Assembly: GCF_006345805.1 (NCBI RefSeq)
Contig: NC_043007.1
Coordinates: 15,190,001 to 15,254,000 of the forward strand
Length of the DNA stretch: 64,000 nucleotides
Direction of reading: 5' to 3'
Origin: Octopus sinensis
Lineage: Eukaryota
Below are positions 21,779 to 22,052 of this stretch, piece after piece (position 1 is the stretch's first letter; the number at the start of each line of letters is the position of its first letter). The notes under the pieces were generated by a model. The model made no database searches. It was not told the origin of the DNA and worked only from the letters and a program-made list of their open reading frames with translations. The translations under genes and the position numbers were made by a program.

Positions 21779-22052
21779 GATAAATCTCAGAGCGAGTTAT
21801 ATTTGTGAAGGGATCTGACTTCTCATCGACAACCATGATTGTCACACGCTGATGAAAGGTAAACACCTTGAAACTAGGGTACGTGTGTATCATGTGTTGA
21901 AGACGGGGAGGATGACTCCCCTTCACAAATACTGACAGGACACAGATAGTGTGTCTATAGCCAGCTGGAGGAGATATCTTCCTGGGGCTACAAACTACAG
22001 TAGCATCCACCCTTATGGGTTAGCCATATTCAAATGGCATATATGCATCACT
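21779..22052 (+). mobile_element. Ribozyme-bearing structured island between (TA)n tracts (PLE pseudo-LTR or retrozyme-like, type C)
   Basis: Bounded by (TA)n at 21718-21778 and 22053-22170. Contains the hammerhead below plus several hairpins; the 3' domain is homologous to 48755-48861 (minus strand). Confidence 0.7.
21831..21898 (+). ncRNA. Extended type I hammerhead ribozyme, all core nucleotides canonical
   Basis: cacacg-CTGATGA-aaggt(aaac)acctt-GAAA-c(tagg)g-TA-cgtgtg at 21843-21887. Stem I is extended by catgat/atcatg and aac/gtt across an internal loop. Predicted cut after GUA at 21881. Confidence 0.85.

Follow-up and report, generated by a model that had tools for sequence, protein, structure and literature searches.

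Folded 3' ends that guide the reverse transcriptase (RT) of a retroelement are a known kind of feature. In stringent-type pairs of long and short interspersed elements (LINEs and SINEs), as well as in the 3' untranslated region (UTR) of R2, stem-loops at the 3' end are recognised by the RT of the element. Several SINE superfamilies (V/Vhc, CORE, Deu, Ceph, Nin-DC, MESC and Snail) possess conserved central domains (PMC4758252), and metazoan retrozymes of the non-LTR (non-long terminal repeat) type form tandem arrays of 170–400 nt units with one type-I hammerhead each (PMC7229834; bioRxiv 10.64898/2026.07.22.740005). The insertions of Penelope-like elements (PLEs) are marked by 5' truncation, adjacent inverted 5'-truncated copies and (TA)n targets, and have a tail of 30–40 bp, often at one end only (PMC8557442). 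In Poseidon from Anolis carolinensis, the RT was found to start internally at two sites, which lie in a stem-loop region roughly 90 nt downstream of where the hammerhead cuts; what separates these sites is the "tail", and AT-rich DNA is cleaved (PMC11167929). Here we describe a multi-hairpin RNA module found in six copies in one 64,000-nucleotide stretch of the Octopus sinensis genome (assembly GCF_006345805.1, contig NC_043007.1, positions 15,190,001–15,254,000 of the forward strand; hereafter the window). We consider it probable that an octopus-type genome carries an old retroelement family, spreading by target-primed reverse transcription, and that this module is its conserved 3'-terminal RNA part.

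Six copies of a hairpin module in the window

Two of the copies, at 21938–22040 on the plus strand (A) and 48755–48861 on the minus strand (B), had been paired by the first-pass annotation, which described a conserved multi-hairpin domain with 65–70% similarity between them and (TA)n tracts around both. All of the helices it had listed were found at these positions. The similarity is real: local alignment of A with reverse-complemented B scored 32 (scoring 2/−3) against 14.5 ± 2.3 in dinucleotide shuffles, and 24 (scoring 1/−1) against 7.8 ± 1.2, and with neither scoring did any of 2000 shuffles score as high. The measured identity over the aligned core is slightly lower than had been estimated, 64% if gap columns are left out and 59% if they are counted. 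In a Smith-Waterman comparison covering both strands of the whole window, A and B were reciprocal best non-self matches; blastn with 7-nt words misses the pair because no exact 7-mer is common to both. TA-rich microsatellites indeed lie on both sides of each copy, A being enclosed by Tandem Repeats Finder arrays at 21719–21778 and 22052–22171, and B by an array at 48510–48702 and a TA/TG tract at 48880–49020.

Further copies were revealed by a Smith-Waterman scan, which first gave C and D (26290–26368 (+) and 61503–61582 (−)), and then by a profile. When a covariance model was built from the four copies A–D and searched, it found six members in the window instead of the two described before: A at 21929–22051 (+), D at 61490–61610 (−), B at 48746–48870 (−), C at 26256–26380 (+), C2 at 26209–26310 (−) and E at 15621–15711 (+). 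They are spread over 46 kb, and all are shorter than 300 nt. Pairwise identity of the four long copies (A, B, C and D) is 51–65%, while C, C2 and E form a younger subgroup with 86–91% identity. Upstream of the module the copies share no homology. The copies and their parts, with the hairpin helices named H1 to H5, the model scores and the candidate target-site duplications (TSDs), are as follows.

Copy A, 21929–22051 (+): short 3' end; 120 bits, E 3e-24
Copy A, 21939–21955 (+): H1, carried by A and B only
Copy A, 21958–21990 (+): H2/H3
Copy A, 21998–22006 (+): single-stranded CAGTAGCAT between H2/H3 and H4
Copy A, 22009–22020 (+): H4
Copy A, 22023–22038 (+): H5
Copy A, 22039–22051 (+): terminal box ATATATGCATCAC, with (TA)n directly 3'
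Copy B, 48694–48870 (−): long 3' end; 107 bits
Copy B helices (−): H1 48845–48860, H2/H3 48807–48839, H4 48775–48790, H5 48758–48773
Copy B, 48694–48757 (−): 3' extension, passing into (TA)n
Copy C, 26283–26382 (+): 5'-truncated near H2, short 3' end (...AACATGCTATCACAT); 85 bits
Copy C helices (+): H2/H3 26287–26318, H4 26336–26349, H5 26352–26367
Copy C2, 26151–26267 (−): 5'-truncated at AACAGTAG; 35.5 bits, E 3e-5
Copy C2 parts (−): H4 26240–26253, H5 26222–26237, 3' extension 26151–26221
Candidate TSD of the C2/C pair (+): left 26140–26150 TAACGCATTAG, right 26383–26393 TAACACATTAG, 10 of 11 positions identical
Copy D, 61438–61606 (−): 5' start after a short (TA)4, long 3' end; 108 bits
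Copy D parts (−): H2/H3 61550–61582, H4 61519–61531, H5 61502–61517, 3' extension 61438–61501
Copy E, 15663–15709 (+): 47 nt, 5'-truncated, with H4, H5 and terminal box only; 20.8 bits, E 0.05
TSD of copy E: perfect 10-bp direct repeat AAAATTATAT at 15653–15662 and 15711–15720

Other searches for copies or relatives gave little. A weak nhmmer match (E 0.002) to the part comprising H4, H5 and the box (AACAGTACCACATTAGGACCGCCACATTCTATCGGCAAAAAAAC) was seen at 3252–3309 (−) of an O. bimaculoides locus (L003, CM046603.1), which may be a decayed copy of the module in that genome. Homologues of a 78-aa antisense open reading frame (ORF) over copy A and of a LINE C-terminal ORF, which were searched for as a way to extra copies, were not found. 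Scans of JGI metagenomes with two conserved strings gave either nothing or chance AT-rich matches lacking the module, and two ENA contigs that were examined proved to be unrelated DNA with 47% G+C. It should be mentioned that a segment upstream of copy D (61640–61725 (−), GAGCTGGAATGA ... GAGGTCGAAACCG) is similar to the A and B boxes in the head of the window's abundant SINE; it has no second copy in the window or in the Octopus loci and no ARAGORN call.

Conservation of the fold

A single hairpin with an internal loop comprises H2 (5 bp) and H3 (6 bp), and H4 and H5 are hairpins of 4–5 bp each. The claim of a conserved multi-hairpin domain holds for H2–H5, which are common to every copy long enough to include them, and not for H1, which among the six copies is limited to A and B. 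Likewise, the internal-loop bases AGCT/TGG, earlier described as invariant, are the same in A and B and differ in C (AACA/TAG) and D (AGTT/TGT).

Pairing in this region is kept while the sequence changes. In the MAFFT alignment 90.4% of the cells are paired, compared with 35–59% when the partners are slid by 1–3 columns; six pairs are altered on both sides, compared with 0–3 in the slid controls, at most 4 of 500 shuffles doing as well. The six-sequence alignment fitted to the model gave similar figures (91.2% of cells paired against 35–52% after sliding, seven pairs altered on both sides). RNAalifold, with the alignment as its sole input, recovers H2–H5 with 7 of 18 pairs compensated, and when the helices are defined from A alone, 52 of the 57 cells in B, C and D still pair. 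Neutral evolution simulated at this degree of divergence would leave 52–60% of the pairs intact, and none of 5000 runs reached 91%. The compensatory changes are well illustrated by H4, which reads ACCC/GGGT, GTCC/GGAC, TCCC/GGGA or TTCC/GGAA in different copies, and by one pair of H5: A, B and D have C-G here, C2 and E have U-A, and C shows the intermediate U-G. Seven cells contain a G-U wobble on the given strand and none contains an unpaired A-C; since all seven wobbles are on one strand, the fold is that of an RNA of this sense (plus for copy A).

A coding explanation of these patterns was considered and rejected: differences are distributed evenly over the codon positions (0.36/0.42/0.44, no periodicity), and the change TGGC to TGAC in H5 of C2 and E, which restores a pair, makes a stop codon. 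The search of the whole window against Rfam at the gathering score gave no match to the module, and Rfam 15 at E ≤ 10 around both A and B gave only TA-repeat artefacts (e.g., mir-297 and the pestivirus 3' UTR), in agreement with the earlier statement that the domain could not be assigned to a known class.

Taken at the level of sequence, these results support H2–H5 as an RNA structure of several hairpins that compensatory change has maintained. With pairing maintained over 35–49% divergence and many double changes, most differences among A, B, C and D probably arose in active source elements; decay after insertion would be expected to break pairs. We infer that selection for the fold acted on diverging active source lineages of a mobile element and not evidently on a host function. 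The earlier notion of an RNA structure under selection is thereby qualified as to where this selection acted.

Insertion anatomy and surroundings of the copies

Judged by their boundaries, the six copies behave as retroelement insertions. They have a common 3' part and extend in the 5' direction to different distances: 47 nt in E, 100 nt in C, about 117 nt in C2 and about 170 nt in D and B. Copy E lies between perfect 10-bp direct repeats (8 of 500 shuffles), and its TSD comes after ...CAACTTT plus one additional A; in C the direct repeat adjoins ...ATCACAT. In no copy is there an A-rich or simple-repeat tail between the element and the TSD. The targets are AT-rich: A and B lie inside TA arrays, D follows (TA)4, and the TSD of E reads AAAATTATAT.

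Copies C2 (−) and C (+) are arranged head to head with both 3' ends outward and together make a 170-nt near-perfect hairpin (53 of 58 positions identical between the arms; fold of −93 kcal/mol, z −15.5). The 11-bp repeats TAACGCATTAG and TAACACATTAG abut both ends of this unit, although their match (10 of 11) is not significant alone, being equalled in 55 of 500 shuffles.

The 3' ends fall into two classes about 55 nt apart. Copies A, C and E have short ends, which stop 13–16 nt after H5 in a common terminal box (...ATGCATCAC in A, ...ATGCTATCACAT in C and ...GCATACAACTTT in E). The long ends of B, C2 and D run about 68–70 nt past H5 through a common extension, ...TGTTAMCGAG(AGAT)TWAGAAATATAWTATTT; within the C2/C pair it is present on C2 only. 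When the extensions were aligned globally from H5 as an anchor, the B–C2 and C2–D comparisons both scored 16.8, compared with about −1 ± 5 for random window segments (0 of 600 in both cases); B–D scored 8.5, which 25 of 600 random segments attained. An nhmmer profile of the extension matched in B, C2 and D only. In addition, the sequence beyond the short 3' end of C (26383–26409) resembles that beyond the long 3' end of D (61394–61431 (−)), with a score of 16 against 10 ± 1.8 and 1 of 400 shuffles as high; this likeness would be explained if one older repeat had been the target of both insertions, or if the element also has a read-through form that is longer still.

Directly upstream of copy A we found a palindrome with a hammerhead-like core at its tip.

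21800–21931 (+): imperfect palindrome of 132 nt, directly upstream of copy A
21843–21887 (+): hammerhead-like core, matching a generic type-I hammerhead descriptor

The core, about 50 nt upstream of the module, is the sole descriptor match on both strands of the window. Its parts, CACACG-CUGAUGA-AAGG(UAAACA)CCUU-GAAAC(UAGG)GUA-CGUGUG, place helices I, II and III in type-I order; helix I is CACACG/CGTGTG, helix II is AAGG/CCTT, and helix III consists of 2 bp with a tetraloop. Helix lengths of 6/4–5/2 bp are typical of the metazoan type-I architecture (PMC4209133), and the GTA triplet at 21879–21881 is the predicted cleavage site. Past an internal loop, helix I extends into a long imperfect hairpin. 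The frame that begins at the AUG within CUGAUGA is interrupted by one stop on its way through copy A and is uninterrupted in C. The 13-nt termini of the palindrome recur neither in the window nor in the Octopus loci. A degenerate hammerhead or tRNA-like head in copy D as part of the element was also considered and dropped, since the apparent upstream colinearity of A and D, which takes in the hammerhead region, scores 9.0 and does not exceed that in shuffles (9.1 ± 1.6).

The window itself is AT-rich (35% G+C) and densely occupied by microsatellites: Tandem Repeats Finder gave 83 rows, including 17 TA arrays that make up about 3% of its length. tRNA-related SINEs are also present, and several of the window's repeats match stretches of O. 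sinensis chromosomes at 85–92% identity. No host protein-coding gene is evident near the hairpin module. The following other features were noted.

21227–21533: 307-bp palindrome with arms 77% complementary, directly 3' of a (TA)n array; in appearance a foldback element or one of the miniature inverted-repeat transposable element (MITE) type, unconnected with the hairpin module
25494–26089 (+): LINE-type RT fragment with motifs YRPISLTS and GFRPGRSC, a frameshift at about 25930 and a break at 26089; among named relatives, uncharacterised Octopus sinensis and O. bimaculoides proteins come closest (55–59% identity)
29826–30286 and 60935–61306: two arrays of a 184-bp unit derived from part of the abundant tRNA-related SINE (GGCGGTGAGCTGGCAGAAACG...GAGTTCAAATTCCGCC)
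41981–43356: four copies of a 342-bp unit, 96% identity
56489–56836 (−): open frame of 115 aa containing three units similar to C2H2-type zinc fingers (CxxC...HxxxH); it may belong to a zinc-finger gene, as an exon, or to a LINE ORF, as its N-terminal portion

Origin of the module

The module is the common 3' part of 5'-truncated, TSD-flanked insertions and lies just upstream of two alternative 3' ends. It is therefore likely to serve as the RT-recognition or priming signal of the element, and this function, one of those suggested by the first-pass annotation, is now the leading one. The RT of the element would bind the hairpin module on its RNA, AT-rich DNA would be nicked, and cDNA synthesis would begin internally, immediately 3' of the module, at one or other of two sites. 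Early stops of this synthesis would lead to 5' truncation, and occasional snap-back to inverted pairs. As to the type of element, we favour a PLE, or a non-autonomous element mobilised by a PLE, with a confidence that stays somewhat short of even, because the set of signatures is that published for PLEs. The hammerhead-like core upstream of A would then be the ribozyme of the pseudo-long terminal repeat (pLTR). The complete model, in which the four-hairpin module is a platform for a cephalopod Penelope-like RT with two internal start sites 3' of H5 and the core acts as pLTR ribozyme, is proposed only tentatively.

The likeness to PLEs includes strong 5' truncation with adjacent inverted 5'-truncated copies forming inverted repeats, a candidate for the optional 3' "tail", carried by part of the copies and, in the inverted unit, on a single side, the lack of poly(A), and AT-rich or (TA)n targets. 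Moreover, a structured RNA lies downstream of a hammerhead in the place where cDNA starts in PLEs, the core of copy A being only a candidate in this respect. There are also differences. No ORF for RT/GIY-YIG and no tandem pLTR were seen here, the tail is about 55 nt instead of 30–40, the hammerhead-like core occurs in one copy only, and the binding region of Poseidon is in the first 172 nt of its ORF, whereas the module has no coding signal.

Several points weigh against the retroelement interpretation or its PLE form. The covariation rests on six sequences, three of which (C, C2 and E) are near relatives of each other, and these very sequences served both to derive the structure and to score it. 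The covariance-model search of three O. sinensis/O. bimaculoides loci (L001–L003, about 64 kb) gave no match. No frame for a telomerase-like RT with GIY-YIG endonuclease adjoins any copy, nor was one recognised by eye, without a profile scan, in the stop-free stretches of 70 aa or more, although this says little because all copies are too short to reach the ORF. The only RT fragment near the copies, that at 25494–26089, is of LINE type and not contiguous with them. Direct tandem (pLTR) copies of the module are absent from the window, and the spacing of the 3' ends departs from the published tail length, as noted above. As for the hammerhead-like core, it stands beside one copy of six, its pair 10.1–11.1 is A-U where G-C is usual, and Rfam hammerhead models gave no hit on it at the gathering score, nor at E ≤ 10 in 701 nt or 81 nt. 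The palindrome that carries it (21800–21931) has perfect 13-nt termini with TA on both sides and could be an unrelated foldback insert.

Other kinds of short retroposon were compared as well. With stringent-type LINE/SINE pairs and R2 the copies share a folded RNA at the 3' terminus of the template in which pairing is kept over sequence, together with 5' truncation and variable TSDs; there, however, the tail is A-rich or a short repeat and the 3' terminus is single, whereas here two termini and no tail were found. The central domains of SINEs are similar in being blocks of about 40–100 nt conserved among otherwise unrelated short retroposons, and the Vhc block is a hairpin with an internal loop, as is H2/H3. 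In contrast to them, and as far as descriptions can be compared, the block here is terminal instead of central and has no tRNA-, 5S- or 7SL-like head. Retrozymes too are short, non-coding, AT-rich and highly structured units, which are linked to type-I hammerheads and for which a derivation from PLE pLTRs has been proposed; the module copies, however, are dispersed single units, five of the six having no hammerhead core.

A serious rival shares the same general mechanism: a stringent-type LINE may have supplied the module as its 3' UTR or tail, or the module may be a LINE-derived tail or conserved central domain of a mobilised SINE, its hairpins being read by the LINE RT. We regard this as doubtful, though well worth consideration. 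A common 3' end, 5' truncation and TSDs of 10–11 bp fit any target-primed element, and mollusc SINEs are known whose central domains contain conserved hairpins with an internal loop (PMC4758252). If the palindrome of A is an insert, copies A, B and D begin within about 30 nt of each other, which suggests an element of about 140–200 nt. The LINE RT fragment at 25494–26089 ends about 190–200 nt before C and points the same way; however, it is broken off at 26089, faces the inverted copy C2 and shows no ORF2 continuity with the module, and its Octopus relatives (in L001–L003) have no module within 10 kb. A SINE would be expected to have a tRNA-like head or RNA polymerase III boxes, which neither ARAGORN nor Rfam revealed, and the upstream flanks are not homologous. 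Copies E and C lack an A-rich or simple-repeat tail before the TSD, and two alternative 3' ends, together with a head-to-head pair bearing a 3' end on both arms, are unusual for a LINE. Twin priming inverts a different segment than the one seen in the C2/C pair. Thus, a LINE or SINE tail would account for the mechanism but not for the same two-ended, tail-less, inverted-pair pattern.

Explanations without a retroelement appear far less probable. Clustered host non-coding RNA genes, i.e., paralogues whose fold is under host selection, would agree with the covariation, with the strand-specific wobble pairs and with the presence of six copies in 46 kb against no clear copy in the 64 kb of O. sinensis/O. 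bimaculoides loci. Genes of this kind would hardly include a 47-nt fragment between TSDs (E) or an inverted duplicate (C2/C), and the ragged 5' ends, unrelated flanks, lack of a common promoter or terminator run and lack of an Rfam family make this origin very unlikely. Similarly improbable, and slightly more so, is that the copies are remnants of DNA transposons (MITE, foldback or Helitron-like) whose subterminal palindromes act as DNA, the RNA likeness being incidental. The association with TA tracts and the other palindromic, TA-flanked elements of the window (21227–21533, 21800–21931 and the long hairpin at C) might suggest it, but seven G-T pairs and no A-C mean that only one strand folds fully. 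Besides, there are no terminal inverted repeats and no CTRR 3' end, the TSDs are of 10–11 bp and not 2 bp, and truncation affects one end only. Finally, the first-pass annotation had also suggested a second catalytic domain; this would be a self-cleaving or ligating RNA cooperating with the neighbouring hammerhead. Only its position about 50 nt downstream of the hammerhead-like core in A speaks for this; five of the six copies have no such core beside them, no Rfam ribozyme family matched, and the module consists of ordinary short hairpins without junction or loop bases conserved in all copies. This suggestion finds no support and is scarcely credible.

Returning to the reading as the 3' module of a target-primed retroelement, the value of this locus lies in the divergence of its copies, which is great enough for six sequences alone to show the fold by covariation. 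The signatures of insertion point to PLEs, whose RNA recognition is barely characterised: the template-recognition region has so far been defined by truncation mapping in one lizard element only. If the module is indeed a platform for a Penelope-like RT, it would give the first covariation-supported secondary-structure model for PLE template recognition. Should the link to PLEs be true, it would also offer a testable structural model for the choice of template and start site by telomerase-related enzymes, and the covariance model could help to annotate cephalopod genomes, in which short fragments derived from Penelope elements probably go unclassified at present.

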